Below, in pieces: positions 12,786-48,406 of a DNA stretch of 64,000 nucleotides. Each line of letters starts with the position of its first letter. Positions within the stretch are counted from its first letter, which is position 1. Both the position numbers and the translations under genes were made by a program. This DNA comes from Macrostomum lignano (lineage: Eukaryota). Under the pieces are notes generated by a model. It was not told the origin of the DNA and made no database searches. It worked only from the letters and a program-made list of their open reading frames with translations. Location: assembly GCA_002269645.1 (NCBI GenBank), contig NIVC01002491.1, positions 104,912 to 168,911 on the forward strand, written 5' to 3'.

Positions 12786-13036
12786 CAGCTGGATGAGTCA
12801 TCTAACTATCGATTAGCCAATGTAAGCAAAACTGGATGAGTCATCCGACTATCGATTAGCTAATGTGCGCACAGCTGGATGAGTCATCCGACTATCGATT
12901 AGCCAATGTGTGCACAGCTGGATGAGTCATCCGACTATCGATTAGTCAATGTGCGCACAGCTGGATGAGTCATCCGACTATCGATTAGCCAATGTACGCA
13001 CAGCTGGATGGGTCATCCGACTATCGAGTTGCCAAT
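12786..13036. repeat. 43-bp minisatellite (cagctggatgagtcatccgactatcgattagccaatgtgcgca), ~6 copies, just inside the GPCR intron donor
   Basis: acagctggat at 12871, 12914, 12957. Confidence 0.93.
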
Positions 13037-13060
13037 CAATGCACTATGTCCCAGGCGTAC

Positions 13061-13966
13061 CTGAGGCATGATGCTGACTACGCTGACAAGCACGATGGTT
13101 GTGAGCAGTTTGGTAGTTCGAGTCATCTGCTTGTCATCGTTGGCGGCTGCGGCCTGATGCTTGCCAGCCGCCGCTGCCGCACCAGTCTTGGCTCCGGAGC
13201 GCAGAGTCCGCCGCCTCTCGTCGGTCCGTTTCAGTGATCGAATCAGAAAGATGCTGAGCACGGTGAGCAGCAGGACTGGCAGGAATTTTATGCCGATGCC
13301 CATTATCCAGAAGTTCAGACTGCTCAACACTGAGTCCTGCGAAAATTTCAGCCCGAATGTGTAATAAGACCCGTTGATGTCCAGCTGGCAGGAGTGCTGG
13401 CGCAGAGACACGGTCTCCGCGTCCGTGGGCACCACGTGATGCCCGAGAGTGTTCGGCACCACCATGCCGACGGAGGCGGCGGCGGCCAGAGCGATGGCGA
13501 GTCGGGCGGTGCGGCCGGTGCACAGCTGCTTGCTCCGGACCGGCAGCTCGATGTACACCAAGCGGAAGGTGGCCAGGGCTACGGTGATCCAAGAGCTGCA
13601 GGCGTGAGCAAAGATTGTCACGCACAGCTGAGCCCATAGAAACAGTTGCCATGGCAACGGCTCCGGACAGTCCAGCTTCAGCCGGTTGTTCATGGTGAAG
13701 TAGAGGCAGAACGGCAGGTAGACGGTGGACATGAGGCAGTCAGACAGGGCCAGAGCGGTCAGCAGGGTGTTGGTGGGGTTGCGCATCGAAGGCTGTGCGA
13801 ACACAGCGATGTTCACCAGGTTGGTGGTGACGCCCAGGCTGCACACGAAGGTGGCCAGGTACTTGTGCACGTCCGGGTACCTGCTGGACAGGGCGGCCAG
13901 CAGCGGCGGGACCGGGTCGCACTCGAGAGCGGTGCCGTTGTCCAGCGTTGAAGTCGAGTTGGCCAT
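13061..13966 (-). CDS. Class A peptide GPCR (myosuppressin/DMSR-1/FMRFamide-receptor-like), first coding exon TM1-TM6; joined protein 432 aa
   Basis: TM1 GVTTNLVNIAVF, MRNPTNTLLTALALSD, TM3 SSWITVALATFRLVYI, TM5 KFLPVLLLTVLSIFLI; donor CAG|gtacgc at 13061/13060, 302 codons, phase 0. Confidence 0.92.
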
Positions 13967-20595: not shown

Positions 20596-21789
20596 AACCT
20601 GTTTACTAGAAGTAGATTTTTACAAATATTACAAGATGTGTTTATTAAAAAGTGCGGCCAGCAGTATAGATATGTTTCGCGGTTGATAAGGCATAATTAT
20701 TAATGCTCGTAAATAACAAAATCTGTGCTGCTCTCCGAGTGCCCATTAAATCAATATGGAGCAATTGGCGTCGAGACACGGGAGAGAAGACAGGGGAGGC
20801 TGGCTATAAAAGCCAAAGCTGAGTATAGCTCCATCCCTCGATCGTGCAGCAGGGAGAGGGGCGGAAGCAGGATGAAGGCCACTTAAATCTCTTCGAATTT
20901 GTACTTTTATTCGATGGCTACAGATATGGCTTCAGTTTTTATCGAAAGCTCCGTCTGATTAACTTATTTATATTATGGTCAGGCATCAGGGCATGTTCCC
21001 CCATAGCTTTTACTGGAAGGACATGTCCCCCCTGACCCCCGGTGGCGACGCGCCTGAGCATAGACATTTAGCTGAAGCAATTGCGGCCTTTCATAGAATT
21101 TCTACCATTTGCGAGTGCAACATCCTGAATTGTTATAAAGTAGTTGGAAGCTATACGGAATTGTCGATACGTGATGAAATGAGAGAGAAGCGTCTCAACA
21201 ACTAATTAAATATGGTTTAGTTCGATCTGAAACTTGACCTGCTTTCTGCATGCCAAATGCATATTGCCTTTGATGGAATTCGGGGACTGTATCTATGTGC
21301 ATGTACAAGCATGCAAACTCGCGAACATTATTCCATCCTAAATATGGAAATCCTAGACCCCGAAAAATTAATGATTTGTAATAAGAGAAATTGCACGAAG
21401 CATAATCCACTGTATGAAGCCAACGCTTCTAAATGTACATGTAATAGCGTGTGCTCTGTGTCAGATTGATGTCTGAAAGCAATTCTCTTGGTCTGCCGTG
21501 ATCCGTGAAGCAATCCGTGCTTTCTAGATATCGAAATTCCATATCGATGAAAATTAAAATCATACGAAATTTAAGCAAATAGCAGAAAGATAATTCGAAA
21601 CCAAAATGAAGAAAACGACTGTTGTCCCGTATTATTCTTTAAAAAATTTGTGCATGTAATGCGCACACACGAATTTAAATTCAATACACATAGTAATCAA
21701 CAAAGCGTCTACGCCACTATACAATAAGAAACAACAATAAAATACATTGTCAGCCAGTCAGGCGTGAGACAATGCCACAGCTAGGGCGC

Positions 21790-22265
21790 GTTTGAGGGCT
21801 GGGCGCAAATGTAGGCCGCACCGCCGGCAGCCGAATGCGCGCCCTGTCCCCACCGGTAAGGGTGCCTGCAGCGTCAGCAGCAGCGTACCTCATGCACCGG
21901 CTGCGGCCAGTAAAACTCGGCTCATGATATGGCCAACCAGCTAGCTGGAGTCGCCGACGGCGCAACAGTTCGCTGGGACGGAACAGGCTGGCGCGCGGCG
22001 ATAGAGTGCCGTATTGGTGACTCGCTCGTAGCCGATCTTGAAGGCGGCGAGCAGCAAGCCAGCGTGCGCCGCATCGACCTGCTGTTCAAGCGATTCCGTC
22101 AGCGTCCAGGTCTCGGTGTCGTACAAAAGGACGGTATCGATCACTGCCTGGGACAACGCCGCCCTCTGGCAGTCAGGCAGGGCCTCGGACTGCAGGACAG
22201 CCCTCACGGAACAAAAGGCAGGGCTAGTCCACGGCGACGTCGTCGCAGGTCCTTGCGAACGTCAG
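21790..22265 (-). mobile_element. Degenerate non-LTR retrotransposon (LINE) fragment, region C-terminal to the RT core
   Basis: QAVIDTVLLYDTETWTLTESLEQQVDAAHAGLLLAAF...VTNTALYRR then frameshifted RRRRLQLAGH; matches the LLYGxETWTL / RRRRLxxAGH signature of RTE-like LINE ORF2; stops and frameshifts present. Confidence 0.85.
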
Positions 22266-23689
22266 ACACCAGCAGAGGCGTCGCCATTAGATTTTATGGT
22301 GGGGGGACAAAGCTAAAGAATTTAACATGAACATGTACATGACTAAATTCCCACATTTCCATTATTTTGAAAATCGTTTTGCCAGCACTCATTTTGGGCG
22401 CCCCAGGCACTCATTTTAGCGCCACAGGCACTCATTTTGGAGCAAAAAACGCTACACTTTGGCGCCCTAAAGAAAAATTATTGACTACCATAACGGGTCA
22501 CAAATTGGGGTGGGGGTACAAAGCATTGGCATGTCCACCCCCATTAGCTTTTATTATGACGAAGCCAGAATTATGGTTATTAATTGATTAATTATCATAC
22601 TCTAGGCCATCAAATGCTTTTTGGAAAGTCCCACTTTATATTTTTGTCCAGTATTTTTCATACTTAGCAGAATCATCGAAGTTTTCGTTCGCTATTTATT
22701 TCACTGACAATCTTACGAGCTCTTACTTTTGCAATAAAATCAGTCGTTTTAGTTAGCTATTTATTAATTCTCTTTTTATGCGTTTACACTTGCCCTTCTT
22801 ACTTAAAATTTAAAGTGAGAAACAGGGTAATAACCAAAGTAAAAAATATTTAAATTAGTTTTTGCAGCAATTTTTAATTAAAGTGCTTTATTATATAAAA
22901 AGTATATTCGGTTTTGTTTAAGTTTGTCAAAGCTATTTAAAATGTCTCTAAATTCGTTTGATCAATCCACGAAGATTTATTTAACAACGAATATTTCGTC
23001 CACAATGAGTCGTCAGCCACTCTGCTTCTCTTATTCCTCTCTCTAGACCCACTTAAAAGAAAACGGCTTAAAGAAAACCGTGCTCCTAGTTTATTGATCA
23101 ATATATTGTTGAAGATTATTGTTCTTTCTTTCTAAATCCCTAAAGTCTGATAACAGTACAATATTTTTAAATACTAGGCTCTACTTCCTTTCTATACAAA
23201 GCATAACTAGGCCTATGACTATGTCGCAAGCCTGCCAACACGATTCGAGACAGGGGACCATATCTAATGTGCTAAAAACGAAGTCTGGCTGTTTATGAGA
23301 TCAATTAGGTAGTCCACAGCGCTGATTACATCTTAAGTAACAGTGGGGTAGGCCTAGGCCAAGGCTAGGCCTATCCTAATGCCTATTATAGAGGGCTTAA
23401 ATTAATAGGCCTAGCCTAGCTGCTATTATGGCATAGGTCATAGTGGAGATCATGCTATGTGCCATACTGAATAGCAAAGTTGAAGATCATAATTATATTT
23501 CAATAAATAATGAAAAAGTTTTTGTTTTACTTTACTTTTTTAGTCTATTTTTAACAATACTAGTATATTTTTTGCACAAGCTATAAATGCTAATAATATT
23601 TGCCTATTTAAATTTAGTGCTAAAAATTAAATATTCTAGTCAGGCCATTATATGTTTATAAATTTTTTGTTAGTTATTGTTAGGCCTTA

Positions 23690-24333
23690 GGTAGGGGGTC
23701 CAGTGAGCCTGTTTTTGGCTTGTGCAGAAGGGAAAAATGGCAAAAAAGTGGTCTTCTTTCTGTGGCTATAACTTTTGAAATAATCCATTTCCACTGAATT
23801 CCATACACCCTAGCAGCATATGTGCCTAGTAGAATATAAGATCCACAAGTGGCAACAAAGAGCTACAAAATGACACCAAAAACAATAAGATTGGTTCAGG
23901 AATTATAGAGATATACCCTAAATAAGTAAAAGTAATATATCCCAGGAAAAATAGTATTTAACAAATTTTTGCCAATCTCCACTAAAGTGCATTAATTCCA
24001 GCAACACATGTACACATCAGAATACAGGATCAAAAAGTGGAAACAAAATGCTACAAAATGACACCAAAAGCACCAAGATTGGTTGAAAAATAAAAATGTT
24101 ATACAGATTTTACTGCAAAAAACATATTTTTTCCTCCAAAAACAGCACAGTTTCTAGTGTATTTGAGATACAAAAAAATGCATTTTTTCAGAAGAAAAAC
24201 CTCAATAACTTTTTTATTACTGAACCAATTTTCAAAACCTTGGTGTCATTTCAATCAGAACATCCAGATCTACAAAATGGCATAGTTAAAAGTTAAGAAT
24301 TCAGAAAAAAATTTTCTCACTGGACCCCCTACC
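23690..24333. mobile_element. Non-autonomous DNA transposon (MITE, 644 bp), PIF/Harbinger-like
   Basis: Perfect 18-bp TIRs ggtagggggtccagtgag (23690-23707) / ctcactggaccccctacc (24316-24333), TTA on both flanks; internal repeated ctacaaaatgacaccaaaa motifs; no transposase. Confidence 0.85.
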
Positions 24334-26494
24334 TTAGGGTCTAAGCTATATTATATATTATTAGGCCCCATATAGCCATAGTCTAGAATCTAGATCATGC
24401 TGGGTGCACACCTGAATAAAAATTGAATATTTACAAATATAGTGGCCTATATTAAAAATGGAGTGTATGCCCATTCTTATAACTATGCCAATATTATGAC
24501 AATAAAAGATCTTTTTCGATTGTGTAATGAACCTTTTTGGGAGATAATTTGATAAATTTTTTACTTTTTGGCAATATTATTTATAGAAAAGAATTGATAC
24601 TCAAAGATTTTATTAACTATTTTGTTACATACTAAAAAACTAGAAAGCTTGAAATTTATACTTAGAAATGAACTTTTTTCATCTTTTTTTCTACTTCACA
24701 ATAACTTTTTTGCATGATTTTTTAAAGCGCATAATACATCCATGCATAATATTTTCTTAGGTGTGATGCATGCCAATTGTGTATACCTACTTTTGGCATG
24801 CAAGGCTAATGCATACTTAGTTTATTTTAGAGACTCTAGTAAGATTTTTAAAATTAAAAATTGAATTATTGCACTTAATTATATATATCTTATTGAGAAG
24901 TTTAAATAAATATTTTGTTTATAAAAATAGATTTAAGAGTAAAAAAGTTGACTGTTTTGTTGTGATAAATGCTTTGACTTTTAGAGTGTATTTTTCCTAT
25001 AAAGTACTGAAAGTAGGACTTGTAAATGTAGATGCACAATAATTAAAAAATAGTGGTAAAATATAATGCTCTATTGTATTGTTATACCTTTTTATCTTTG
25101 TAGCCAAAATTAGTCAAATCTCTGTATTCCAATTTTTTTGTAGCCAAATTATAAATTAACAAAAAACCCTAATTTTCAAAGGCAAAGACCAAAATGTGAA
25201 GACAAAGCAAAAGCAATTAAACAAAAAGCAAAAACTCTTAGATTTAGGTATGTTTAGTTTGGTACTATAAATATAGATGCATTTTATATGAGATAGCCAA
25301 TATTGTGTTTATTTTTTTAGCCAAAAATATAAAAATTTAAATAAAATAAACCTTTTTTACAAAAAAAATTCTGCTTGATTTATATTGTTACAAGAAATTA
25401 TATATGATGCTCCAAATCTCTATAATCCATAACCATATCTTTGCCAATTGGCAAGATCTCCATAGTTGCAGTCTGTAATCAAATTTTGCTTGAAAAAGTG
25501 CCACCCTAAATTTCCCATAACCATAGCCATAATTATTGTAGAATGCTATAAAATGTAAGTCAAAAAATGTCTAAATGTTTTTAATAGAAAAATATATCAA
25601 AATTAAATTAAGAAAGAAATAATAAAAGTTATGAACAAAACCAAAAACACAATTTTTTGATAAAATAACTTTTAGTGAATATATATATTTTTTTTGGCTA
25701 CAATAATAATTGTCATATGGAGCACCTTTTATTCTTAATATTATACTATACTATACCTTTCAAAAATTTTGTGGCTTACTATTTTTTCTATACATCATAT
25801 TATGCTTTGTTATCTGCTGTCATTTGTTTAAAAGTTTTGAATAATTCATAGGAATTCTAGCCTCCTACAATCCAGATTTTATCACCCCTCCCTAGTTCAT
25901 TAGTGCATATATAAAATTTCTGTGCCAACTTTTTATACATTCTTTCAGAAGCAAGATGTTTTATTAAAGTATGGAAGTGTCATTTTATTTCTATAATTTT
26001 TTTTTTCTTTGTAAGTTGGACATTATTTTTATTTTAGCTTCCTTTTTTAAGTTTTCTTTGATCAATGTCCAGTTATACCATAAATGCAAAAACTGGAAAA
26101 TGGGCCATTTTTGCATACCAACTATATGCTAATATTAAACCCAAAATTATATACACTAAGATTCTTAGTTAAAGGCAAAAATATGCCAGTATTGCTGTAT
26201 TTTCCAACAAAGTCACTTTCCATGGTACATGGTTCTATAGGACCATGATATGTACTATACCACCTTGACTATAATGTATTAATATTAAACTATGCTGACA
26301 AATCTTTCCAATGCTATTGCCTCTTATTCTGTAGAAAGCTTTTGAATCTTGCATCTTTGGTTCCCATCCCCTCTGCCTTAACCCTGCAGGTTATAAAAAA
26401 TCCAATTAGTTGGGGCATTTATTGTTTTTTATTATTACCTAAACTAACTATAGTAATGTTTACAGATATATCTATCTTTAATATTCTATCTAAA

Positions 26495-26565
26495 TATCAT
26501 GATGATAAAATTCTTGACCTGAACTACAAAAACAGTGATGGTTCAAGCTCAACAGGACTGAGAAT
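26495..26565 (+). ncRNA. Box C/D snoRNA candidate (copy 1), guide for 28S rRNA
   Basis: C box ATGATGA 26499-26505, D' CTGA 26519-26522, C' GTGATGG 26535-26541, guide tcaagctcaacagg 26543-26556, D box CTGA 26558-26561; guide complementary to conserved LSU CCUGUUGAGCUUGA. Confidence 0.8.
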
Positions 26566-26670
26566 CTATTCAATTTGTTAACTATCAATTCATTTTAAAA
26601 CCAAACAAGTTGTTACTGCAAACGCCGCATCTTCTATTTGATGAATGCATGCTGATCGAGTTAGCCAATC

Positions 26671-26881
26671 ATGTCTGGTCGTGCCGGTGGTAAAGCTGCC
26701 AGAAAATCTACTGGAAAGCAGCAGAAAAGCAAATCGTCTCGCGCCGGACTAGTTATGCCGGTTGCTAGGGTTCATCGCTACCTGAAACTCGGTCGCTACG
26801 GTAAGAAAGTTAGCGTCGGCGCCAGCGTCTACCTTGCCGCCGTCATGGAGTACCTGGTTGCGGAGGTCAACGAACTAAGCG
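26671..26881 (+). CDS. H2A: Divergent histone H2A variant, exon 1
   Basis: MSGRAGGK...[19 protein letters not shown]...[18 protein letters not shown]; donor G|gtaaga at 26881/26882, phase 1. Confidence 0.93.
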
Positions 26882-27303
26882 GTAAGAGCTCTACTCAAGC
26901 CGTAGAATGTGTAAACGGCTTTTTTGTTATTTTGCATATCATATTAGTTTAGAATGAATGATTGCTACTAAGGGGAATCAGCGCAGCTCTCTATTTTTAT
27001 TAGAGTCAGGGGACCTGTGTGCACCCTGGCGCACTTTAAGTGACACTTAAAGTCACAACCGGCGAGATGCGTTGCTGCCCATTCCGCCGACTCCCCTGAG
27101 CAGGCACACAAGCGCGCGGATGCGTACGCACTTATATTTTAGGCATGAACACTTCACTGTGCCCTGGTGGTGGGCCTCAAGGCCGCGTTAATTGCACAAG
27201 CCGAGATTCCAATTTAGCTCCAAAATTATTGTGATTGCACTTGGAATCGAGCCGCTTAGCAGAGTAGCTTCATTACCCCAGCCCAGTGAACTATTACTAG
27301 TAA

Positions 27304-27373
27304 CTCTATGATGATAAAATTCTAAATCACGGACCTAAGCTCATGACGGTTCAAGCTCAACAGGACTGAAAAA
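27304..27373 (+). ncRNA. Box C/D snoRNA candidate (copy 2), intronic in the H2A gene
   Basis: C box ATGATGA 27308-27314, C' ATGACGG 27343-27349, same guide 27351-27364, D box CTGA 27366-27369; lies ~108 nt upstream of the 3' splice site. Confidence 0.8.
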
Positions 27374-27477
27374 ATGCATTCTTTTTCTCCCATGCGCCAA
27401 TGGTGCTACTTATCAGTAGCAAGTCAAGCTTAGATTTGTTCTCCCCCCCCCGCTCCGCACAAAACGCCAACATGCAG

Positions 27478-27674
27478 GCAACGCTGCCAGGGCTAACAAG
27501 AGGAAGACCGTCACGCCCAGGCACATCATGCTAGGCGTGCGCAACGACGCCGAACTGAACGAACTGTTGAAGCACGTGCACATCAGCTTTGGCGGCGTGC
27601 TGCCCTCTATCCATCCTGTGTTGCTGAAGAAGAAGGGCAGCTTGCCGGCTGTGCCGCAGGGCAAGAGTGGCTAA
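27478..27674 (+). CDS. H2A: Divergent histone H2A variant, exon 2 (joined protein 135 aa)
   Basis: Acceptor atgcag|GC gives [65 protein letters not shown]; phase consistent with exon 1. Confidence 0.93.
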
Positions 27675-29990
27675 GGCCCGAATCCCCGGGTTTTCTTTGA
27701 CTAAATTAACTCATTAATTACAGCGTGGCAGCAGGGCAAAATTATTGCTAAATAGCTACATTTTTCATACTAAAAGTTTGGCCGTTTTTTAATCAAGCAA
27801 ATTTTTATTATTTAGCCAATCTGTCAAATTGAACTGTTTTGTATAAATTTGTTTTTCTCTTTTCAACTGTCAAGTTATGCTGATATACCTTCAGCCATAG
27901 TTGATTAGTACAAATGTAACTGTAAAAGTTGATTGCTGATTAGCTCTCTTAAAATTATGCGATTTTGTCATCGCGGCACTTATTTCTGTTCTGTTCCCCG
28001 TTTTTAGCGCAGTCGGTCATCTCTGTTGTAAAAAATCATTAAATACGCATCATCTGTTGCTGTCAGTCTCCATTTCTCTACATCCTGCACTGCCCTTGTC
28101 TAACTATCTAGCCCGCATCATACTACTAGCAATGAGTAATGCTAGAGCGTTGAAAAGTAAAAAAATACACTACTATATCAAATATAATTTCTCAACTTAG
28201 CGGTGTTAAATATACACGTTTATTAAATGATGTTGTGTTATTGCTGTTTTCTTCATTGTCTCTCTTGAAGTGCGCAGGTGTGTTGTGGAAACCTGAAATA
28301 ATGGGGAATTGAAAAGTTTGTTATTGGTATTGCATTACGACTGGGAATCTCCAATATTATGTATTGTTGACTGGCCGATTTAATCCGATAGCGTTTGAGC
28401 GGGGAAGGTGCAATACGATTTTAGGCGCTTTTTTATTGCGCAATTTGCAACAATTGAGATTAAATATTGCTATTGCAGTCTTCGCATGTCACCTGCTCGC
28501 CCAGCGCTACCGGATCTGTTTTGGTCTGTCAGGCTGGCTATAGTGGAGTAACTCTAATAAGCCGCTGTAATAGTCAAGCTGAAGCTCCGAGCTCTTTGAG
28601 TTTAGCTCTGGGCTCAGCTCGGTCCTACTTATAGGGCTCCTCACGGCGGGCGGCTGTGTGCGCGGCCAGTGCTGTGCAGTTTGGGGGGCCGCGACCGTCG
28701 CCTGACCCTCACCGCCTCATTGTTGGGTCTTGGAGTTCTTCGGGGGGAGAGAGGGAGAGGGTTATGACAGCGGGCTGGGGCTGGGTCAGAACAATGCAGT
28801 GCTCGCTATTATGGCTGCAGGCGATCAGGACTGCATTTTTCTTCTCCGAGCGAGGCAAGCAGACGCGCCTGGCTGAGCACGTCGGAGTGGTGTGGAGGGG
28901 CTGCTTTTGCTGTTGCAGCTGCGTGCCGCCTTAGCGGACCCGCCCAGCCCTGCACCCCCAGGCTAAACACGGGCAGCTCACACACTGTTAGCTGCTTTGT
29001 GCTTCTCTCCGTGTGCTCAGGCATTCTCCAAGAGCTCAAGATTTTTAAGAATGAGATGGAAGGCATATGCACACCGGCGCCGGAGCACCTGGTTGAAGAA
29101 GATTTGACTTGAATAGCCACCGCGGGCAGGCATTGCTTTACAATAATAGTTCAGCAGCCTTTATGGGCATTATTTGTATTAGTTTATTATATAGGTGAGT
29201 CGAATATTTCAGTCACATCAACAGGGGAGGGGGGTTTTAAAGTAGCATGTGGTTGCAGTGAGCTTCATTTTTGGTCTATTGTGTTGATTATAAGCTGGCA
29301 ATTGTGTGGCATATAGTGAGCATATATTAATACTATTTCACCCTCACTCTGCGAATGCAGGCGCATGCTGCAATTTTCGAATATCAAACTAAAAACTTTG
29401 TTGAGCTGCATTCATCTACAAGCAGCTCTCTTACCTCTATTATTATTCAGCTGTATGGTTGAAAACAGCCCAAACTGCAGATGCAATACATATGTATATG
29501 CCATTCGCCACTCTCTGTCCCTCTGTTGGGTGCATTTGCAGTTTTATTCATGCCAATCCTGGCAATTGCAAGTGTTTTTGCTTTCAAAAAAAGTAAACAG
29601 CGGGACGATGCCTCGTCACCCAATTAGTGCAATACTTTTGGGCTACTATGCATTATCTATAGGCCTTTGAAAGTTGTGTAGAGTTTGAATTTATTTGATA
29701 GGAATCCACAACGGCAAATATGCGTCTTAATTGTACATAACATTTTATCTTATCACTTTTCAGTTTCACTCTTTTCCGCACACGCGTATAAACATGCACA
29801 AATCAGTCGCTCCTTAACACAGTCTCGATGGTCTCGCATTATTCCTAAATGTAAGACAAACATTTTTAAATTCGTGTATAATTATTGCAATATCTCATTT
29901 TAATCGTCATAAAAGATAGAGCATTGTATCATTTGCTTTTACTTGGTGAGTTTACTGTCACCTTAGTGCATTGCTTGCTATCTTCTGTCA

Positions 29991-32900
29991 AGCAGATTTA
30001 AGCACTGAGGGCGGAGAGATCGAGGCAGATTCAAGCACTGAGGGCGGAGAGAGGCAGATTCAAGCACTGAGGGTGGAGAGAGGCAGATTCAAGCACTGCA
30101 GGGGGAGCAGAAAGGCAGATTCAAGCACTAAGGGCGGAGAGAGGCAGATTCAAGCACTGAGGGAGAGGCAGATTCAAGCACTGAGGGAGAGGCAGATTCA
30201 AGCACTGAGGGAGAGGCAGATTCAAGCACTGAGGGAGAGGCAGATTCAAGCACTGAGGGAGAGGCAGATTCAAGCACTGAGGGAGAGGCAGATTCAAGCA
30301 CTGAGGGTGGAGAGAGACAGATTCAAGCACTGAGGGCGGAGAGAGGCAGATTAAAGCACTGAGGGCGGAGAGAGGCAGATTCAAGCACTGAGGGGAGGCA
30401 GATGCAAGCATTGAGGGTGGAGAGAGGCAGATTCAAGCACTGAGGGTGGAGAGAAGCAGATTCAAGCACTGAGGAAGCAGCAGATTCAAGCACTGAGGGT
30501 GGAGACAGGCAGATTCAAGCACTGAGGGTGGAGAGAGGCAGATTCAAGCACTGAGGGCGGAGAGAGGCAGATTCAAGCACTGAGGGAGAGGCAGATTCAA
30601 GCACTGAGGGGAGGCAGATTCAAGCATTGAGGGTGGAGAGAGGCAGATTCAAGCACTGAGGGAGAGGCAGATTCAAGCACTGAGGGCGGAGAGAGGCAGA
30701 TTCAAGCACTGAGGGTGGAGAGAAGCAGATTCAAGCACTGAGGGAGAGGCAGATTCAAGCACTGAGGGAGAGGCAGATTCAAGCACTGAGGGAGAGGCAG
30801 ATTCAAGCACTGAGGGAGAGGCAGATTCAAGCACTGAGGGAGGGGAGATAGGCAGATTAAAGCACTGAGGGAGGGGAGAGAGGCAGATTCAAGCACTGAG
30901 GGCGGAGAGAGGCAGATTCAAGCACTGATGGTGGAGAGAGGCAGATTCAAGCACTGAGGGAGGGGAGAGAGGCAGATTCAAGCACTGTGGGAGCGGAGAG
31001 AGGCAGATTCAAGCACTGAGGGAGCAGCAGATTCAAGCACTGAGGGAGCGGAGAGAGGCAGATTCAAGCACTGAGGGTGGAGAGAGGCAGATTCAAGCAC
31101 TGAGGGAGCGGCAGATTCAAGCACGGAGGGAGAGGCAGATTCAAGCACTGAGGGAGCGGAGAGAGGCAGATTCAAGCACTGAGGGAGCGGAGAGAGGCAG
31201 ATTCAAGCACTGAGGGTGGAGAGAGGCAGATTCAAGCACTGAGGGAGCGGCAGATTCAAGCACTGAGGGCGGAGAGAGGCAGATTCAAGCACTGAGGGAG
31301 CGGAGAGAGGCAGATTCAAGCACTGAGGGCGGAGAGAGGCAGATTCAAGCACTGAGGGTGGAGAGAGGCAGATTCAAGCACTGAGGGTGGAGAGAGGCAG
31401 ATTCAAGCACTGAGGGAGAGGCAGATTCAAGCACTGAGGGAGAGGCAGATTCAAGCACTGAGGGAGCAGCAGATTCAAGCACTGAGGGAGCGGAGAGAGG
31501 CAGATTCAAGCACTGAGGGAGGGGAGAGAGGCAGATTCAAGCACTGAGGGAGGGGAGAGAGGCAGATTCAAGCACTGAGGGCGGAGAGAGGCAGATTCAA
31601 GCACTGAGGGAGGGGAGAGAGGCAGATTCAAGCACTGAGGGCGGAGAGAGGCAGATTCAAGCACTGAGGGAGGGGAGAGAGGCAGATTCAAGCACTGAGG
31701 GTGGAGAGAGGCAGATTCAAGCACTGAGGGAGCGGCAGATTCAAGCACGGAGGGAGAGGCAGATTCAAGCACTGAGGGAGCGGAGAGAGGCAGATTCAAG
31801 CACTGAGGGAGCGGAGAGAGGCAGATTCAAGCACTGAGGGTGGAGAGAGGCAGTTTCAAGCACTGAGGGAGCGGCAGATTCAAGCACTGAGGGAGCGGCA
31901 GTTTCAAGCACTGAGGGAGCGGCAGATTCAAGCACTGAGGGCGGAGAGAGGCAGATTCAAGCACTGAGGGAGGGGAGAGAGGCAGATTCAAGCACTGAGG
32001 GAGGGGAGAGAGGCAGATTCAAGCACTGAGGGCGGAGAGAGGCAGATTCAAGCACTGAGGGTGGAGAGAGGCAGATTCAAGCACTGAGGGTGGAGAGAGG
32101 CAGATTCAAGCACTGAGGGAGGGGAGAGAGGCAGATTCAAGCACTGAGGGAGGGGAGAGAGGCAGATTCAAGCACTGAGGGCGGAGAGAGGCAGATTCAA
32201 GCACTGAGGGTGGAGAGAGGCAGATTCAAGCACTGAGGGTGGAGAGAGGCAGATTCAAGCACTGAGGGAGAGGCAGATTCAAGCACTGAGGGAGCGGAGA
32301 GAGGCAGATTCAAGCACTGAGGGTGGAGAGAGGCAGATTCAAGCACTGAGGGAGAGGCAGATTCAAGCACTGAGGGAGCAGCAGATTCAAGCACTGAGGG
32401 AGCGGAGAGAGGCAGATTCAAGCACTGAGGGAGCGGAGAGAGGCAGATTCAAGCACTGAGGGAGCGGAGAGAGGCAGATTCAAGCACTGAGGGAGCGGAG
32501 AGAGGCAGATTCAAGCACTGAGGGCGGAGAGAGGCAGATTCAAGCACTGAGGGAGCAGCAGATTCAAGCACTGAGGGAGCGGAGAGAGGCAGATTCAAGC
32601 ACTGAGGGAGCGGAGAGAGGCAGATTCAAGCACTGAGGGAGCGGAGAGAGGCAGATTCAAGCACTGAGGGTGGAGAGAGGCAGATTCAAGCACTGAGGGA
32701 GCGGAGAGAGGCAGATTCAAGCACTGAGGGAGCGGAGAGAGGCAGATTCAAGCACTGAGGGCGGAGAGAGGCAGATTCAAGCACTGAGGGTGGAGAGAGG
32801 CAGATTCAAGCACTGAGGGAGGGGAGAGAGGCAGATTCAAGCACTGAGGGAGGGAGAGAGGCAGATTCAAGCACTGAGGGAGCGGAGAGAGGCAGATTCA

Positions 32901-35900
32901 AGCACTGTGGGAGCGGAGAGAGGCAGATTCAAGCACTGAGGGAGCAGCAGATTCAAGCACTGAGGGAGAGGCAGATTCAAGCACTGAGGGAGCGGAGAGA
33001 GGCAGATTCAAGCACTGAGGGTGGAGAGAGGCAGATTCAAGCACTGAGGGTGGAGAGAGGCAGATTCAAGCACTGAGGGAGCGGCAGATTCAAGCACTGA
33101 GGGAGAGGCAGATTCAAGCACTGAGGGAGGGGAGATAGGCAGATTCAAGCACTGAGGGAGGGGAGAGAGGCAGATTCAAGCACTGAGGGTGGAGAGAGGC
33201 AGATTCAAGCACTGAGGGAGCGGCAGATTCAAGCACGGAGGGAGAGGCAGATTCAAGCACTGAGGGAGCGGAGAGAGGCAGATTCAAGCACTGAGGGAGC
33301 GGAGAGAGGCAGATTCAAGCACTGAGGGAGCAGAAAGGCAGATTCAAGCACTGAGGGAGCAGAAAGGCAGATTCAAGCACTGAGGGAGAGGCAGATTCAA
33401 GCACTGAGGGAGCGGAGAGAGGCAGATTCAAGCACTGAGGGAGCGGAGAGAGGCAGATTCAAGCACTGAGGGAGCGGAGAGAGGCAGATTCAAGCACTGA
33501 GGGAGCGGAGAGAGGCAGATTCAAGCACTGAGGGTGGAGAGAGGCAGATTCAAGCACTGAGGGAGCGGCAGATTCAAGCACTGAGGGAGAGGCAGATTCA
33601 AGCACTGAGGGAGCGGAGAGAGGCAGATTCAAGCACTGAGGGAGCGGAGAGAGGCAGATTCAAGCACTGAGGGAGGGAGAGAGGCAGATTCAAGCACTGA
33701 GGGAGCAGCAGATTCAAGCACTGAGGGAGAGGCAGATTCAAGCACTGAGGGCGGAGAGAGGCAGATTCAAGCACTGAGGGAGGGGAGAGAGGCAGATTCA
33801 AGCACTGAGGGAGCGGAGAGAGGCAGATTCAAGCACTGAGGGAGCGGAGAGAGGCAGATTCAAGCACTGAGGGAGAGGCAGATTCAAGCACTGAGGGAGC
33901 GGAGAGAGGCAGATTCAAGCACTGAGGGTGGAGAGAGGCAGATTCAAGCACTGAGGGTGGAGAGAGGCAGATTCAAGCACTGAGGGAGCGGCAGATTCAA
34001 GCACGAGGGAGAGGCAGATTCAAGCACTGAGGGAGCGGAGAGAGGCAGATTCAAGCACTGAGGGAGCGGAGAGAGGCAGATTCAAGCACTGAGGGTGGAG
34101 AGAGGCAGATTCAAGCACTGAGGGAGCGGCAGATTCAAGCACGGAGGGAGAGGCAGATTCAAGCACTGAGGGAGCGGAGAGAGGCAGATTCAAGCACTGA
34201 GGGAGCGGAGAGAGGCAGATTCAAGCACTGAGGGTGGAGAGAGGCAGTTTCAAGCACTGAGGGAGCGGCAGATTCAAGCACTGAGGGAGCGGCAGTTTCA
34301 AGCACTGAGGGAGCGGCAGATTCAAGCACTGAGGGCGGAGAGAGGCAGATTCAAGCACTGAGGGTGGAGAGAGGCAGATTCAAGCACTGAGGGAGGGAGA
34401 GAGGCAGATTCAAGCACTGAGGGCGGAGAGAGGCAGATTCAAGCACTGAGGGTGGAGAGAGGCAGATTCAAGCACTGAGGGTGGAGAGAGGCAGATTCAA
34501 GCACTGAGGGAGGGGAGAGAGGCAGATTCAAGCACTGAGGGAGGGGAGAGAGGCAGATTCAAGCACTGAGGGCGGAGAGAGGCAGATTCAAGCACTGAGG
34601 GTGGAGAGAGGCAGATTCAAGCACTGAGGGTGGAGAGAGGCAGATTCAAGCACTGAGGGAGAGGCAGATTCAAGCACTGAGGGAGCGGAGAGAGGCAGAT
34701 TCAAGCACTGAGGGTGGAGAGAGGCAGATTCAAGCACTGAGGGAGAGGCAGATTCAAGCACTGAGGGAGCGGCAGATTCAAGCACGGAGGGAGAGGCAGA
34801 TTCAAGCACTGAGGGAGCGGAGAGAGGCAGATTCAAGCACTGAGGGAGCGGAGAGAGGCAGATTCAAGCACTGAGGGTGGAGAGAGGCAGATTCAAGCAC
34901 TGAGGGAGCGGCAGATTCAAGCACTGAGGGAGCGGCAGTTTCAAGCACTGAGGGAGCGGCAGATTCAAGCACTGAGGGCGAGAGAGGCAGATTCAAGCAC
35001 TGAGGGAGGAGAGAGGCAGATTCAAGCACTGAGGGAGGGAGAGAGGCAGATTCAAGCACTGAGGGCGGAGAGAGGCAGATTCAAGCACTGAGGGTGGAGA
35101 GAGGCAGATTCAAGCACTGAGGGTGGAGAGAGGCAGATTCAAGCACTGAGGGAGGGAGAGAGGCAGATTCAAGCACTGAGGGAGGGAGAGAGGCAGATTC
35201 AAGCACTGAGGGCGGAGAGAGGCAGATTCAAGCACTGAGGGTGGAGAGAGGCAGATTCAAGCACTGAGGGTGGAGAGAGGCAGATTCAAGCACTGAGGGA
35301 GAGGCAGATTCAAGCACTGAGGGAGCGGAGAGAGGCAGATTCAAGCACTGAGGGTGGAGAGAGGCAGATTCAAGCACTGAGGGAGAGGCAGATTCAAGCA
35401 CTGAGGGAGCAGCAGATTCAAGCACTGAGGGAGCGGAGAGAGGCAGATTCAAGCACTGAGGGAGCGGAGAGAGGCGGAGAGAGGCAGATTCAAGCACTGA
35501 GGGAGCGGAGAGAGGCAGATTCAAGCACTGAGGGAGCGGAGAGAGGCAGATTCAAGCACTGAGGGCGGAGAGAGGCAGATTCAAGCACTGAGGGAGCAGC
35601 AGATTCAAGCACTGAGGGAGCGGAGAGAGGCAGATTCAAGCACTGAGGGAGCGGAGAGAGGCAGATTCAAGCACTGAGGGAGCGGAGAGAGGCAGATTCA
35701 AGCACTGAGGGGGAGAGGCAGATTCAAGCACTGAGGGAGCGGAGAGAGGCAGATTCAAGCACTGAGGGAGCGGAGAGAGGCAGATTCAAGCACTGAGGGC
35801 GGAGAGAGGCAGATTCAAGCACTGAGGGTGGAGAGAGGCAGATTCAAGCACTGAGGGAGGGGAGAGAGGCAGATTCAAGCACTGAGGGAGGGGAGAGAGG

Positions 35901-38900
35901 CAGATTCAAGCACTGAGGGAGCGGAGAGAGGCAGATTCAAGCACTGTGGGAGCGGAGAGAGGCAGATTCAAGCACTGAGGGAGCAGCAGATTCAAGCACT
36001 GAGGGAGAGGCAGATTCAAGCACTGAGGGAGCGGAGAGAGGCAGATTCAAGCACTGAGGGGGAGAGAGGCAGATTCAAGCACTGAGGGTGGAGAGAGGCA
36101 GATTCAAGCACTGAGGGAGCGGCAGATTCAAGCACTGAGGGAGAGGCAGATTCAAGCACTGAGGGAGGGGAGAGGCAGATTCAAGCACTGAGGGAGGGGA
36201 GAGAGGCAGATTCAAGCACTGAGGGTGGAGAGAGGCAGATTCAAGCACTGAGGGAGCGGCAGATTCAAGCACGAGGGAGAGGCAGATTCAAGCACTGAGG
36301 GAGCGGAGAGAGGCAGATTCAAGCACTGAGGGAGCGGAGAGAGGCAGATTCAAGCACTGAGGGAGCAGAGAGGCAGATTCAAGCACTGAGGGAGCAGAGG
36401 CAGATTCAAGCACTGAGGGAGAGAGCAGATTCAAGCACTGAGGGAGCGGAGAGAGGCAGATTCAAGCACTGAGGGAGCGGAGAGAGGCAGATTCAAGCAC
36501 TGAGGGAGCGGAGAGAGGCAGATTCAAGCACTGAGGGAGCGGAGAGAGGCAGATTCAAGCACTGAGGGGGAGAGAGGCAGATTCAAGCACTGAGGGAGCG
36601 GCAGATTCAAGCACTGAGGGAGAGGCAGATTCAAGCACTGAGGGAGCGGAGAGAGGCAGATTCAAGCACTGAGGGAGCGGAGAGAGGCAGATTCAAGCAC
36701 TGAGGGAGGGGAGAGAGGCAGATTCAAGCACTGAGGGAGAGCAGATTCAAGCACTGAGGGAGAGGCAGATTCAAGCACTGAGGGCGGAGAGAGGCAGATT
36801 CAAGCACTGAGGGAGGGAGAGAGGCAGATTCAAGCACTGAGGGAGCGGAGAGAGGCAGATTCAAGCACTGAGGGAGCGGAGAGAGGCAGATTCAAGCACT
36901 GAGGGAGAGGCAGATTCAAGCACTGAGGGCGGAGAGAGGCAGATTCAAGCACTGAGGGTGGAGAGAGGCAGATTCAAGCACTGAGGGTGGAGAGAGGCAG
37001 ATTCAAGCACTGAGGGAGCGGCAGATTCAAGCACGAGGGAGGGAGAGGCAGATTCAAGCACTGAGGGAGCGGAGAGAGGCAGATTCAAGCACTGAGGGAG
37101 CGAGAGAGGCAGATTCAAGCACTGAGGGTGGAGAGAGGCAGATTCAAGCACTGAGGGAGCGGCAGATTCAAGCACGGAGGGAGAGGCAGATTCAAGCACT
37201 GAGGGAGCGGAGAGAGGCAGATTCAAGCACTGAGGGAGGAGAGAGGCAGATTCAAGCACTGAGGGTGGAGAGAGGCAGATTCAAGCACTGAGGGAGCGGC
37301 AGATTCAAGCACTGAGGGAGCGGCAGATTCAAGCACTGAGGGCGGAGAGAGGCAGATTCAAGCACTGAGGGAGGGGAGAGAGGCAGATTCAAGCACTGAG
37401 GGAGGGGAGAGAGGCAGATTCAAGCACTGAGGGAGAGAGGCAGATTCAAGCACTGAGGGTGGAGAGAGGCAGATTCAAGCACTGAGGGTGGAGAGAGGCA
37501 GATTCAAGCACTGAGGGAGGGAGAGAGGCAGATTCAAGCACTGAGGGAGGGAGAGAGGCAGATTCAAGCACTGAGGGGGAGAGAGGCAGATTCAAGCACT
37601 GAGGGAGAGAGGCAGATTCAAGCACTGAGGGTGGAGAGGGCAGATTCAAGCACTGAGGGAGAGAGGCAGATTCAAGCACTGAGGGAGAGAGAGGCAGATT
37701 CAAGCACTGAGGGTGGAGAGAGGCAGATTCAAGCACTGAGGGAGAGGCAGATTCAAGCACTGAGGGAGCGGCAGATTCAAGCACTGAGGGAGAGGCAGAT
37801 TCAAGCACTGAGGGAGCGGAGAGAGGCAGATTCAAGCACTGAGGGAGCGGAGAGAGGCAGATTCAAGCACTGAGGGTGGAGAGAGGCAGTTCAAGCACTG
37901 AGGGAGCGGCAGATTCAAGCACTGAGGGAGCGGCAGTTTCAAGCACTGAGGGAGCGGCAGATTCAAGCACTGAGGGCGGAGAGAGGCAGATTCAAGCACT
38001 GAGGGAGGGAGAGAGGCAGATTCAAGCACTGAGGGAGGGGAGAGAGGCAGATTCAAGCACTGAGGGCGGAGAGAGGCAGATTCAAGCACTGAGGGTGGAG
38101 AGAGGCAGATTCAAGCACTGAGGGTGGAGAGAGGCAGATTCAAGCACTGAGGGGGGAGAGAGGCAGATTCAAGCACTGAGGGAGGGGAGAGAGGCAGATT
38201 CAAGCACTGAGGGCGGAGAGAGGCAGATTCAAGCACTGAGGGTGGAGAGAGGCAGATTCAAGCACTGAGGGTGGAGAGAGGCAGATTCAAGCACTGAGGG
38301 AGAGGCAGATTCAAGCACTGAGGGAGCGGAGAGAGGCAGATTCAAGCACTGAGGGTGGAGAGAGGCAGATTCAAGCACTGAGGGAGAGGCAGATTCAAGC
38401 ACTGAGGGAGCAGCAGATTCAAGCACTGAGGGAGCGGAGAGAGGCAGATTCAAGCACTGAGGGAGCGGAGAGAGGCAGATTCAAGCACTGAGGGAGCGGA
38501 GAGAGGCAGATTCAAGCACTGAGGGAGCGGAGAGAGGCAGATTCAAGCACTGAGGGCGGAGAGAGGCAGATTCAAGCACTGAGGGAGCAGCAGATTCAAG
38601 CACTGAGGGAGCGGAGAGAGGCAGATTCAAGCACTGAGGGAGCGGAGAGAGGCAGATTCAAGCACTGAGGGAGCGGAGAGAGGCAGATTCAAGCACTGAG
38701 GGTGGAGAGAGGCAGATTCAAGCACTGAGGGAGCGGAGAGAGGCAGATTCAAGCACTGAGGGAGCGGAGAGAGGCAGATTCAAGCACTGAGGGCGGAGAG
38801 AGGCAGATTCAAGCACTGAGGGTGGAGAGAGGCAGATTCAAGCACTGAGGGAGGGAGAGAGGCAGATTCAAGCACTGAGGGAGGGAGAGAGGCAGATTCA

Positions 38901-41900
38901 AGCACTGAGGGAGCGGAGAGAGGCAGATTCAAGCACTGGGGAGCGGAGAGAGGCAGATTCAAGCACTGAGGGAGCAGCAGATTCAAGCACTGAGGGAGAG
39001 GCAGATTCAAGCACTGAGGGAGCGGAGAGAGGCAGATTCAAGCACTGAGGGTGGAGAGAGGCAGATTCAAGCACTGAGGGTGGAGAGAGGCAGATTCAAG
39101 CACTGAGGGAGCGGCAGATTCAAGCACTGAGGGAGAGGCAGATTCAAGCACTGAGGGAGGGGAGATAGGCAGATTCAAGCACTGAGGGAGGGAGAGAGGC
39201 AGATTCAAGCACTGAGGGTGGAGAGAGGCAGATTCAAGCACTGAGGGAGCGGCAGATTCAAGCACGAGGGAGAGGCAGATTCAAGCACTGAGGGAGCGGA
39301 GAGAGGCAGATTCAAGCACTGAGGGAGCGGAGAGAGGCAGATTCAAGCACTGAGGGAGCAGAAAGGCAGATTCAAGCACTGAGGGAGCAGAAAGGCAGAT
39401 TCAAGCACTGAGGGAGAGGCAGATTCAAGCACTGAGGGAGCGGAGAGAGGCAGATTCAAGCACTGAGGGAGCGGAGAGAGGCAGATTCAAGCACTGAGGG
39501 AGCGGAGAGAGGCAGATTCAAGCACTGAGGGAGCAGCAGATTCAAGCACTGAGGGAGAGGCAGATTCAAGCACTGAGGGCGGAGAGAGGCAGATTCAAGC
39601 ACTGAGGGAGGGCAGATTCAAGCACTGAGGGAGCGGAGAGAGGCAGATTCAAGCACTGAGGGAGCGGAGAGAGGCAGATTCAAGCACTGAGGGCGGAGAG
39701 GCAGATTCAAGCACTGAGGGAGCGGAGAGAGGCAGATTCAAGCACTGAGGGAGGAGAGAGGCAGATTCAAGCACTGAGGGTGGAGAGAGGCAGATTCAAG
39801 CACTGAGGGAGCGGCAGATTCAAGCACTGGAGCGGAGAGGCAGATTCAAGCACTGAGGGAGCGGAGAGAGGCAGATTCAAGCACTGAGGGAGCGGAGAGA
39901 GGCAGATTCAAGCACTGAGGGAGAGAGGCAGATTCAAGCACTGAGGGAGCGGCAGATTCAAGCACTGAGGGAGAGGGCAGATTCAAGCACTGAGGGAGAG
40001 AGGCAGATTCAAGCACTGAGGGAGCGGAGAGAGGCAGATTCAAGCACTGAGGGTGGAGAGAGGCAGATTCAAGCACTGAGGGAGCGGCAGATTCAAGCAC
40101 TGAGGGAGCGGCAGATTCAAGCACTGAGGGCGGAGAGGCAGATTCAAGCACTGAGGGAGAGAGGCAGATTCAAGCACTGAGGGAGGGAGAGAGGCAGATT
40201 CAAGCACTGAGGGAGGAGAGAGGCAGATTCAAGCACTGAGGGAGAGAGGCAGATTCAAGCACTGAGGGTGGAGAGAGGCAGATTCAAGCACTGAGGGAGG
40301 GAGAGAGGCAGATTCAAGCACTGAGGGAGGGAGAGAGGCAGATTCAAGCACTGAGGGAGGGAGAGAGGCAGATTCAAGCACTGAGGGGGAGAGAGGCAGA
40401 TTCAAGCACTGAGGGTGGAGAGAGGCAGATTCAAGCACTGAGGGAGAGAGGCAGATTCAAGCACTGAGGGAGAGAGAGGCAGATTCAAGCACTGAGGGTG
40501 GAGAGAGGCAGATTCAAGCACTGAGGGAGAGAGGCAGATTCAAGCACTGAGGGAGAGGGCAGATTCAAGCACTGAGGGAGAGGCAGATTCAAGCACTGAG
40601 GGAGAGGCAGATTCAAGCACTGAGGGAGCGGAGAGAGGCAGATTCAAGCACTGAGGGAGGAGAGAGGCAGATTCAAGCACTGAGGGAGCGGCAGATTCAA
40701 GCACTGAGGGAGCGGCAGATTCAAGCACTGAGGGAGCGGCAGATTCAAGCACTGAGGGAGGAGAGAGGCAGATTCAAGCACTGAGGGAGGGAGAGAGGCA
40801 GATTCAAGCACTGAGGGAGGGAGAGAGGCAGATTCAAGCACTGAGGGCGGAGAGAGGCAGATTCAAGCACTGAGGGTGGAGAGAGGCAGATTCAAGCACT
40901 GAGGGTGGAGAGAGGCAGATTCAAGCACTGAGGGAGGGAGAGAGGCAGATTCAAGCACTGAGGGAGGGAGAGAGGCAGATTCAAGCACTGAGGGCGGAGA
41001 GAGGCAGATTCAAGCACTGAGGGTGGAGAGAGGCAGATTCAAGCACTGAGGGTGGAGAGAGGCAGATTCAAGCACTGAGGGAGAGAGGCAGATTCAAGCA
41101 CTGAGGGAGAGAGGCAGATTCAAGCACTGAGGGAGAGAGAGGCAGATTCAAGCACTGAGGGAGAGGCAGATTCAAGCACTGAGGGAGCAGAGCAGATTCA
41201 AGCACTGAGGGAGCGGAGAGAGGCAGATTCAAGCACTGAGGGAGCAGATTCAAGCACTGAGGGAGGCAGATTCAAGCACTGAGGGAGCGGAGAGAGGCAG
41301 ATTCAAGCACTGAGGGAGGGAGAGAGGCAGATTCAAGCACTGAGGGCGGAGAGAGGCAGATTCAAGCACTGAGGGAGCAGCAGATTCAAGCACTGAGGGA
41401 GCGGAGAGAGGCAGATTCAAGCACTGAGGGAGCGGAGAGAGGCAGATTCAAGCACTGAGGGTAGAGAGAGGCAGATTCAAGCACTGAGGGGAGAGAGGCA
41501 GATTCAAGCACTGAGGGAGCGGAGAGAGGCAGATTCAAGCACTGAGCGGAGAGAGGCAGATTCAAGCACTGAGGGCGGAGAGAGGCAGATTCAAGCACTG
41601 AGGGTGGAGAGAGGCAGATTCAAGCACTGAGGGAGGGAGAGAGGCAGATTCAAGCACTGAGGGAGCGGAGAGAGGCAGATTCAAGCACTGAGGGAGCGGA
41701 GAGAGGCAGATTCAAGCACTGAGGGAGCGGAGAGAGGCAGATTCAAGCACTGAGGGAGCAGAGAGGGAGCAGATTCAAGCACTGAGGGAGCGGAGAGAGG
41801 CAGATTCAAGCACTGAGGGTGGAGAGAGGCAGATTCAAGCACTGAGGGTGGAGAGAGGCAGATTCAAGCACTGAGGGAGCGGCAGATTCAAGCACTGAGG

Positions 41901-44900: not shown

Positions 44901-45174
44901 CAAGCACTGAGGGAGGGGAGAGAGGCAGATTCAAGCACTGAGGGAGCAGCAGATTCAAGCACTGAGGGAGAGGCAGATTCAAGCACTGAGGGCGGAGAGA
45001 GGCAGATTCAAGCACTGAGGGAGGGGAGAGAGGCAGATTCAAGCACTGAGGGAGCGGAGAGAGGCAGATTCAAGCACTGAGGGAGCGGAGAGAGGCAGAT
45101 TCAAGCACTGAGGGAGCAGAAAGGCAGATTCAAGCACTGAGGGAGCAGAAAGGCAGATTCAAGCACTGAGGGAG
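29991..45174. repeat. 15-kb variant-repeat minisatellite: constant gcagattcaagcactgaggg plus a 4-11 nt purine linker (units 24-31 bp), roughly 540 units, with higher-order repeats
   Basis: Direct reading; linker variants agag, agcg, agca, cggagagag, tggagagag, agcggagagag, aggggagagag, agcagaaag. Confidence 0.98.
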
Positions 45175-48381: not shown

Positions 48382-48406
48382 TATCATCGCCGCGCCTCTC
48401 GCGAAG

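Follow-up and report, generated by a model that had tools for sequence, protein, structure and literature searches.

We analysed a 64,000-nt stretch of the genome of the flatworm Macrostomum lignano (referred to as the window), in which a two-exon gene for a variant of histone H2A occupies positions 26671 to 27674 of the plus strand. Positions 21671-32674 of the window were matched without a difference to contig NIVC01002491.1 (assembly GCA_002269645.1). The gene is made up as follows:

26671..26881, + strand: exon 1, with the ATG, the N-terminal tail, αN, α1, the L1 loop and most of α2
26689..26712, + strand: H3-like motif GKAARKST, codons 7-14; the string ARKSTG reaches 26715, three bases further
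26882..27477, + strand: single GT-AG intron of 596 nt, phase 1, within Gly71
27478..27674, + strand: exon 2, with the rest of α2, the L2 loop (ANKRKT), α3, αC, the docking domain and the C-terminal tail
27675..28255, + strand: inferred 3′ untranslated region (UTR), about 580 nt long; its ATTAAA poly(A) signal lies at 28222-28227

Exon 1 ends with the first base of the Gly71 codon, at the splice donor G/GTAAGA (26881), and the acceptor before 27478 consists of a C-rich tract followed by ACATGCAG/G. An in-frame TAG stands 9 nt 5′ of the ATG at 26671, and the reading frame closes, after a short C-terminal tail, with TAA at 27672-27674. The spliced coding sequence (CDS) of 408 nt yields a protein of 135 amino acids (aa), which agrees letter for letter with the two-exon product quoted in an earlier note on this DNA, and which is 100% identical to the M. 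lignano proteins PAA57429, PAA69791 and PAA71809 (Mlig005952.g1/g3; UniProt A0A1I8IR38, 'Histone H2A'). The ATTAAA signal was read from the sequence, and a poly(A) tail on the M. lignano mRNA is presumed. Another M. lignano entry in UniProt, A0A1I8FBG8 (P0009; 150 aa, 'Histone H2A'), is a frameshifted model of the same gene family, and its N-terminus is a wrong-frame translation around the start codon (window open reading frame (ORF) 26645-26752).

In the protein, both the H2A histone fold and the docking domain are complete. Pfam assigned it to Histone (PF00125; 46 bits, 6.7e-12) and Histone_H2A_C (PF16211; 52 bits, 6.4e-14), both above the cut-offs, and H2A chains of the PDB matched it at E-values of 1e-37 to 5e-43. 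The AlphaFold model displays the αN-α1-α2-α3-αC layout with disordered tails, its predicted local distance difference test (pLDDT) score being at least 90 over most of residues 21-100 and about 77 near L1 (residues 41-50), and the best Foldseek matches of the model were H2A chains in nucleosomes. In the alignment, the docking domain is full-length through LLKKK and aligned without gaps. Five of the six acidic-patch residues are kept, that is, the arginine-anchor residues E61, D90 and E92 and likewise E56 and E64; E91 is replaced by alanine, and so is D72. The strings in which the earlier note had seen a departure from canonical H2A (LGRYGKKV in L1, NDAEL, VTPRHI and a string in the C-terminal core) were all found in the alignment. 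As it had also stated, the SQ[E/D]Φ motif of H2A.X is absent from the C-terminus of the protein. The features of H2A.Z are absent from the alignment as well, and the core is 50-54% identical to H2A.Z, which is below its identity to canonical H2A.

The closest proteins form a tight group with 72-82% identity to the M. lignano variant. It includes sequences from trematodes (Schistosoma, Heterobilharzia, Trichobilharzia, Paragonimus and Calicophoron) and cestodes (Echinococcus, Taenia, Hymenolepis, Mesocestoides, Anoplocephala, Schistocephalus, Spirometra and Dibothriocephalus), together with the sequences P0002, P0003, P0005, P0006, P0010, P0011 and P0121. The core identity to human and flatworm canonical H2A and to macroH2A1 is 55-63%; for comparison, macroH2A and H2A.Z are each 67-69% identical to canonical H2A. 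A neighbour-joining tree was built from 39 sequences on a gap-free core alignment of 101 columns with 500 bootstrap replicates. It sampled macroH2A from vertebrates only and H2A.Z with one sequence, and H2A.W of plants, the short H2A.B/L/P of mammals and the H2A variants of bdelloid rotifers lay outside the sampling. As H2A.Z was the outgroup, a grouping with H2A.Z was outside what the tree could show. The flatworm clade received a bootstrap value of 100%, macroH2A 99.8% and the Neodermata inside the clade 91%.

At 19 positions the clade is fixed (at least 85%) for a residue that none of the sampled canonical sequences has. Numbered as in human H2A, the changes are Q24V, F25M, G44S, T59V, L63N, A66S, R71K, D72A, K75R, T76K, R77T, I79T, L83I, Q84M, A86G, E91A, S98K, T101H and P117K. 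They fall within α2/α3, the L1-L2 region, the docking domain and the acidic patch (E91A, D72A). In addition, the L1 loop is basic (N38R, E41R/K). The changes in L1, L2, the acidic patch and the docking domain are thus fixed across the flatworm orthologues, which bears out the proposal of the earlier note that the gene encodes a lineage-specific H2A with a remodelled core. Judged by the sequences compared, the variant belongs to a clade that is known so far from flatworms only. A profile search with the clade alignment returned fused double-H2A gene models from fish only and no further orthologues.

Within the clade, the trematode and cestode orthologues (P0004-P0016, P0125-P0142) carry a C-terminal extension of 30-45 aa rich in Ser, Gly, Ala and Thr, and S-x-R-Q recurs in most of these sequences; the extension is absent from the short-tailed, probably free-living forms. 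The Schistosoma orthologue (L004/L006) has a single intron of about 3 kb in phase 2 of Arg76 (Arg79 in M. lignano), 25 nt from the Macrostomum site, and the P0003 gene (L011) is uninterrupted in a 2.2-kb contig; therefore, intron positions are not conserved in the clade. Several of the flatworm substitutions are also present in the arthropod H2A variants P0095 (Copidosoma 'histone H2A, sperm-like'), P0116 and P0114, in the strings RYLRLG, VGAS, LVAE, ELSG, NDAEL and LLKN. This likeness is due either to convergence or to long-branch attraction.

The assembly contains three near-identical genomic copies of the gene (L001-L003). Both exons are identical throughout, with no difference at any of the 408 coding positions, whereas the other two copies differ from the window copy at 16-18 of 592 aligned intron positions (about 3%) and diverge from it by 1.7-3.1% over 1 kb upstream; in the downstream and 3′ UTR region, divergence between copies is 1.0-1.2%. 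Between orthologues, the proportion of differences at synonymous sites (pS) is 0.74-0.98 and that at non-synonymous sites (pN) 0.17-0.23 (17-23% of non-synonymous sites). Since synonymous sites are saturated, dN/dS between orthologues is not computable. The lack of coding differences beside diverged noncoding sequence and the low pN at saturated synonymous sites point to purifying selection instead of decay, and we conclude that the gene is under strong purifying selection.

Both the intron and the missing canonical 3′ stem-loop that the earlier note had described were recovered: besides the GT-AG intron, Rfam gave no match to the histone 3′ stem-loop (RF00032) in the window, and none even at E ≤ 10 in 27600-28600. 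Searches by tblastn with H2A, H2B, H3 and H4 revealed no other histone gene in the 64 kb. The presence of an intron, the lack of a stem-loop and the lack of another histone gene within 64 kb together indicate a replication-independent H2A, as the earlier note had proposed.

A transcript that matches the gene is listed in the supplementary tables of Grudniewska et al. 2016 (PMC5173321). RNA1509_1673 is 1038 nt long with a GC content of 0.4355 and 73 transcripts per million (TPM), is flagged TRANSSPLICED and 5UTR_CDS_3UTR, and is trans-spliced; its weak human match is H2AFX (9e-36) and its best UniRef50 match A0A068WX00_ECHGR (7e-52). One column reads 135, which we took as the ORF length following the TransRate convention. 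The mRNA predicted from the window (two exons and the 3′ UTR to shortly past ATTAAA) has about 1000-1040 nt and a GC content of 0.437-0.440, and the Echinococcus protein A0A068WX00_ECHGR is a member of the variant's orthologue cluster. Because length, ORF size, GC content and best database match agree, RNA1509_1673 was taken to derive from this gene or a twin, and a trans-spliced, polyadenylated mRNA of about 1 kb is very probably made from this gene. Among the orthologues, P0002 and P0006 are intron-less metatranscriptome contigs of about 1 kb, one of them ending in an A-run, and the source names of the S. japonicum orthologue records suggest a cDNA origin.

In the same tables, the cluster of RNA1509_1673 is flagged 'Int S/G2/M', 'S/G2/M, no gonads' and 'Neoblast', is without the 'Germline by FACS' flag and stands outside the stringent neoblast class (PMC5173321). 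Its log fold change (logFC) in G2/M over G1 is 0.85-0.93, corresponding to about 1.8-fold enrichment in S/G2/M cells, and it is present in G1 cells at 6.3-7.0 log counts per million (logCPM). After irradiation it changes by -0.13, -0.49 and -0.62 at 12, 24 and 72 h, a drop of about 35% by day three, and the H1 clusters of the table stand at about -3 by 12 h (PMC5173321). Provided that the transcript is that of the gene, such a profile is what one would expect of a replacement variant that leans somewhat towards cycling cells, and not of an S-phase histone.

The N-terminal tail of the protein contains two exact 6-mers of the H3 tail, KAARKS (H3 23-28) and ARKSTG (H3 7-12), as the earlier note had pointed out. 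They overlap in KAARKSTG at residues 7-14, where Lys11, in an A-R-K-S/T context, is the candidate modified residue. None of 332 H2A-family tails outside the clade has a match of six or more residues to H3 residues 1-41, and 0.17% of the shuffles of the M. lignano tail reach an H3 6-mer. Matches of five residues are present in 74 of the 332 tails, for the most part TGGKA in vertebrate sequences that are nearly identical, and the unrelated H2A P0026 carries AARKS; the motif is thus unusual, yet within reach of the tail composition. The tripeptide ARK occurs in 36 of 37 clade tails and in 2 of 334 other H2A tails. The residue that follows it within the clade is Ser in M. lignano and its relative P0121 (over 90% identical) only, and these are also the only two with the full 8-mer KAARKSTG. 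It is Thr in P0002 and P0003, both short-tailed and probably free-living, Pro in trematodes and cestodes, and Ala in schistosomes, while P0006 reads VKKP. When aligned by eye, GGKAARK of the variant faces GGKARAK of canonical H2A, which makes Lys11 the counterpart of canonical Lys13.

Across these tails, then, the conserved part is the clade-wide GK-A-R-K core, and the ARKS/T context is limited to four short-tailed lineages. The earlier note had named a lack of conservation in orthologues as refuting its idea; this applies to the extension, the 8-mer being confined to the Macrostomum type, and not to the core. The ARKS motif is of secondary weight and does not define the variant; its appearance in Macrostomum is, as far as the tail alignment tells, a late and local change, and it is not the conserved function of the variant.

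On the reading suggested in the earlier note, the tail motif would act as an H3K9/K27 mimic: enzymes of the G9a, SUV39 or EZH2 type would methylate Lys11 of KAARKSTG and HP1/Polycomb chromodomains would read it, with Ser12 phosphorylation as a switch, so that H2A would offer a docking site for repressive marks. The exact 6-mers with their rarity among shuffles and other H2A tails, the ARK core that is near-universal inside the clade and near-absent elsewhere, and the retention of ARK[S/T] in four short-tailed, probably free-living lineages speak for this. M. lignano moreover expresses a neoblast-enriched HP1 (CBX1) homologue and an EHMT1 homologue, and hence candidate readers and writers exist. 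ARK[S/T] sites outside H3, namely H1.4 Lys26 and the automethylation site of G9a, are methylated and bound by HP1. They share with the variant the A-R-K-S/T context in a disordered basic tail, and the neodermatan GKARK(P/A)AGG resembles the H1.4 context too. However, the Ser/Thr of these known sites is unconserved in the variant, which offers a candidate site only, and this site is on the tail of the core histone H2A, which exits the nucleosome elsewhere than the H3 tail. The Pro or Ala after the lysine in every trematode and cestode orthologue and the VKKP of P0006 mean that an ARKS/T chromodomain site cannot be the conserved role of the tail. In addition, H2A and H3 tails are alike in composition, with 5-mer matches being common, and Lys11 is by position an ordinary H2A tail lysine. 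We therefore regard a functional mimic as unlikely; it is a similarly doubtful prospect that in Macrostomum, and perhaps also in the ARKT lineages, Lys11 might be a true methyl-lysine site, set by H3K9/K27-type methyltransferases, read by HP1 or Polycomb chromodomains and gated by Ser12 phosphorylation. If true, deposition of the variant would add to the nucleosome a second heterochromatin docking site independent of H3.

A macroH2A-like fold had been proposed as well, and on such grounds the variant could descend from a macroH2A that lost its linker and macro domain and kept the macroH2A-like properties of the histone fold. VTPRHI and IHP-x-LL-KK are indeed common to both, as are T79, I83 and K98; the S. 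haematobium orthologue is auto-annotated as 'Core histone macro-H2A.2', and macroH2A was the most frequent single sister group of the clade in the bootstrap trees. But a bootstrap value of 28% for this pairing amounts to no support, and insect variants on long branches took the sister position with about equal frequency. Only 3 of the 19 clade residues are found in macroH2A, and the variant agrees with macroH2A at only 2 of 7 positions specific to the latter; it does not have the macroH2A signature HPKY in L1, and an ordinary H2A of Fonticula contains both IHP and, letter for letter, the 12-residue string that the earlier note had linked to macroH2A. The resemblance is thus superficial, and, as the earlier note had held, a macro domain is missing: Pfam detected none in the protein, and none in ORFs from the 2.3 kb that follow the gene. 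When the macroH2A histone fold was used as a query, the matches were truncated macroH2A1/2 from vertebrates and ordinary H2As, with no macroH2A from an invertebrate; as none of the last was available for the tree, the test of a macroH2A origin is a weak one. On balance we consider this origin quite improbable. A germline- or sperm-specific packaging H2A, comparable to the sperm H2A variants of other invertebrates, would fit the extra basic residues in the DNA-facing loops and the several substitutions in common with insect 'sperm-like' H2A variants. It is nevertheless very unlikely, as the matching transcript cluster is without the germline flag, is enriched in S/G2/M cells of gonad-less animals and juveniles, and is present in G1 cells. 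Finally, the solitary position of the gene in a very repeat-rich region and its divergence from canonical H2A could suggest a pseudogene or a decaying extra copy, with the odd residues being the result of drift. Against decay stand the intact reading frame, the canonical splice sites, a CDS that is identical in three copies despite noncoding divergence, the same 19 substitutions fixed across trematodes, cestodes and probably free-living lineages at saturated synonymous sites, and the matching transcripts. The present evidence has effectively refuted this explanation, to which we attach next to no probability, and the doubt about expression that the earlier note had raised is answered in the same way, given the very probable transcript.

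We hold it highly likely that this locus, present in three copies, is a functional M. lignano gene whose product is a replacement H2A, made independently of replication and belonging to a flatworm clade. Nucleosomes with the variant may differ in dimer pairing, DNA grip and surface; our confidence refers to the nature of the gene and not to the direction of these biophysical effects. Several points weigh against this interpretation. Gene conversion could partly explain the lack of coding differences among the copies. The gene was connected with RNA1509_1673 by length, ORF size, GC content and best match and not by transcript sequence, and the reading of '135' as the ORF length follows the usual order of TransRate columns. 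The taxonomic spread is bounded by the content of the databases, the clade being without a named planarian, polyclad or catenulid sequence. The structural effects of the substitutions are extrapolated from canonical nucleosomes, and incorporation into chromatin is a proposal made from sequence.

As a replacement H2A, the variant would take the place of canonical H2A, which bears SQEY in flatworms, in a subset of nucleosomes and would thereby change their surfaces. The L1 loop is the sole H2A-H2A contact in the octamer, where the canonical residues N38 and E41 pair across the loop. As this pairing is replaced by a basic loop with R38 and K41 (N38R, E41K/R), the pairing of dimers may be altered, and partner preference and the stability of the pair should change. 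In the L2 loop of canonical H2A, R77 reaches into the minor groove of the DNA. The variant has its arginine two residues away (K75R, R77T) and the loop gains charge (T76K, D72A), which may alter the DNA contacts. Loss of E91 from the acidic patch (E91A), with N63 (L63N) adjacent, might change how the H4 tail and chromatin factors bind. The docking domain, which holds the H2A dimer on H3-H4, would also be affected by T101H, the variable residue 104 (Q104) and P117K. In Macrostomum alone, the tail extension could make Lys11 a substrate for enzymes of the H3K9/K27 type.

The variant has the same fold and core length as the canonical or H2A.X-type H2As of flatworms (Mesocestoides P0078; S. mansoni Smp_086860), and it has in common with them an SGRGK-type N-terminus, in most orthologues, and the acidic residues E56, E61, E64, D90 and E92. 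It differs from them by an identity of about 60%, the 19 fixed substitutions and the lack of the SQEY C-terminus, and the Macrostomum copy also by its intron and the lack of a stem-loop. Canonical flatworm H2A ends in SQEY (P0078; primers for Smp_086860, PMC7749135) and thus doubles as H2A.X. With macroH2A the variant shares VTPRHI, K98 and IHP…LL.KK, and both are replacement variants with a changed L1 loop, but the variant has no linker or macro domain, another L1 sequence and E91A, where macroH2A keeps DEE. Plant H2A.W, mammalian H2A.B/L/P and the bdelloid rotifer H2A variants are clade-specific, replication-independent paralogues too, and such lineage-restricted H2As depart from canonical H2A at the L1 loop, the acidic patch, the docking domain and the tails. 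Unlike H2A.W, the flatworm variant has no SPKK tail, and unlike the short H2A.B/L/P, its docking domain and C-terminus are not truncated and only one acidic-patch residue is lost. In the tree this previously uncharacterised variant falls in a separate, flatworm-only clade.

Two histones with similar names were considered and rejected. Grudniewska et al. knocked down a gene called 'Mlig-h2a', which is the homologue of H2A.Z (H2AFV) and not the present variant, and the schistosome stem-cell marker h2a (Smp_086860) is not an orthologue, as its primers encode a canonical H2A of the MSGRGKG… / …KKSQSQEY type (PMC7749135). We found no mention of UniProt G4VN61 in papers, no variant-specific peptide in the Echinococcus H2A epitope paper, and no paper describing the variant; the reachable flatworm and planarian literature covers H2A.Z, H3.3, and canonical H2A and H2B markers.

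The gene is accompanied by a duplicated segment:

26491..26576, + strand: copy of an 85-nt duplicated segment upstream of the gene; the second copy is in the intron, at 27301-27386

Both copies contain the exact 22-mer GGTTCAAGCTCAACAGGACTGA, which precedes the ATG by 131 nt in the upstream copy and exon 2 by 130 nt in the intronic copy; it has no third occurrence in the 64 kb. The duplication may be a regulatory element, a splicing-related element or a repeat fragment.

In the wider window, the neighbours of the H2A gene are a G-protein-coupled receptor (GPCR), a mariner-like transposase and a GH38 α-mannosidase. The GPCR, of the rhodopsin/Srw type, is an uninterrupted ORF of 317 aa at 13013-13966 on the minus strand. 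Exons of the GH38 lysosomal α-mannosidase were found at 50752-52793 on the plus strand, and this gene is also annotated 3′ of the H2A gene in L002. The mariner/Mos1-like transposase ORF (46468-47442, minus strand; matches to HTH_48, DDE_3 and Transposase_1) lies within about 46356-47627; as this 1.27-kb stretch is absent from the homeologous loci L001 and L002, the transposon is a copy-specific insertion. The H2A gene itself is located in a unique island of low GC content (26-44%) between minisatellite arrays. At 29992-45172 there is a minisatellite of 15.2 kb with a 31-nt unit, GCAGATTCAAGCACTGAGGGGGGAGAGAG, in about 537 copies. Its plus strand is strongly purine-rich (GC skew about 0.44, AT skew about 0.48), and the array is greatly expanded in the window copy, since L001 and L002 have only about 690 bp of it. 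At 45763-46395, the 18-nt unit AACCCTAATCCCTAACCC is repeated in tandem 35 times, forming a telomere-like (TTAGGG-type) repeat that is internal to the contig. More than 15 separate minisatellite arrays with units of 16-43 nt and lengths of 0.2-1.8 kb each are spread over 1-20600 and 48200-59200.

Current annotations of the orthologues give only 'histone H2A', 'hypothetical protein', 'late histone H2A.L3' and 'macro-H2A.2', the last of these wrongly. The 'h2a' markers in use in the field are other genes, and vertebrate hosts have no counterpart of the variant. The ARKS question is a narrower matter at the level of the genus. As transgenesis and RNA interference (RNAi) are possible in M. lignano, the function of the variant is directly testable there. 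Flatworms are leading models of adult pluripotent stem cells and regeneration and include major parasites of humans and livestock; should a strongly conserved replacement H2A of their own be present throughout the group, it would constitute an unstudied layer of flatworm chromatin.

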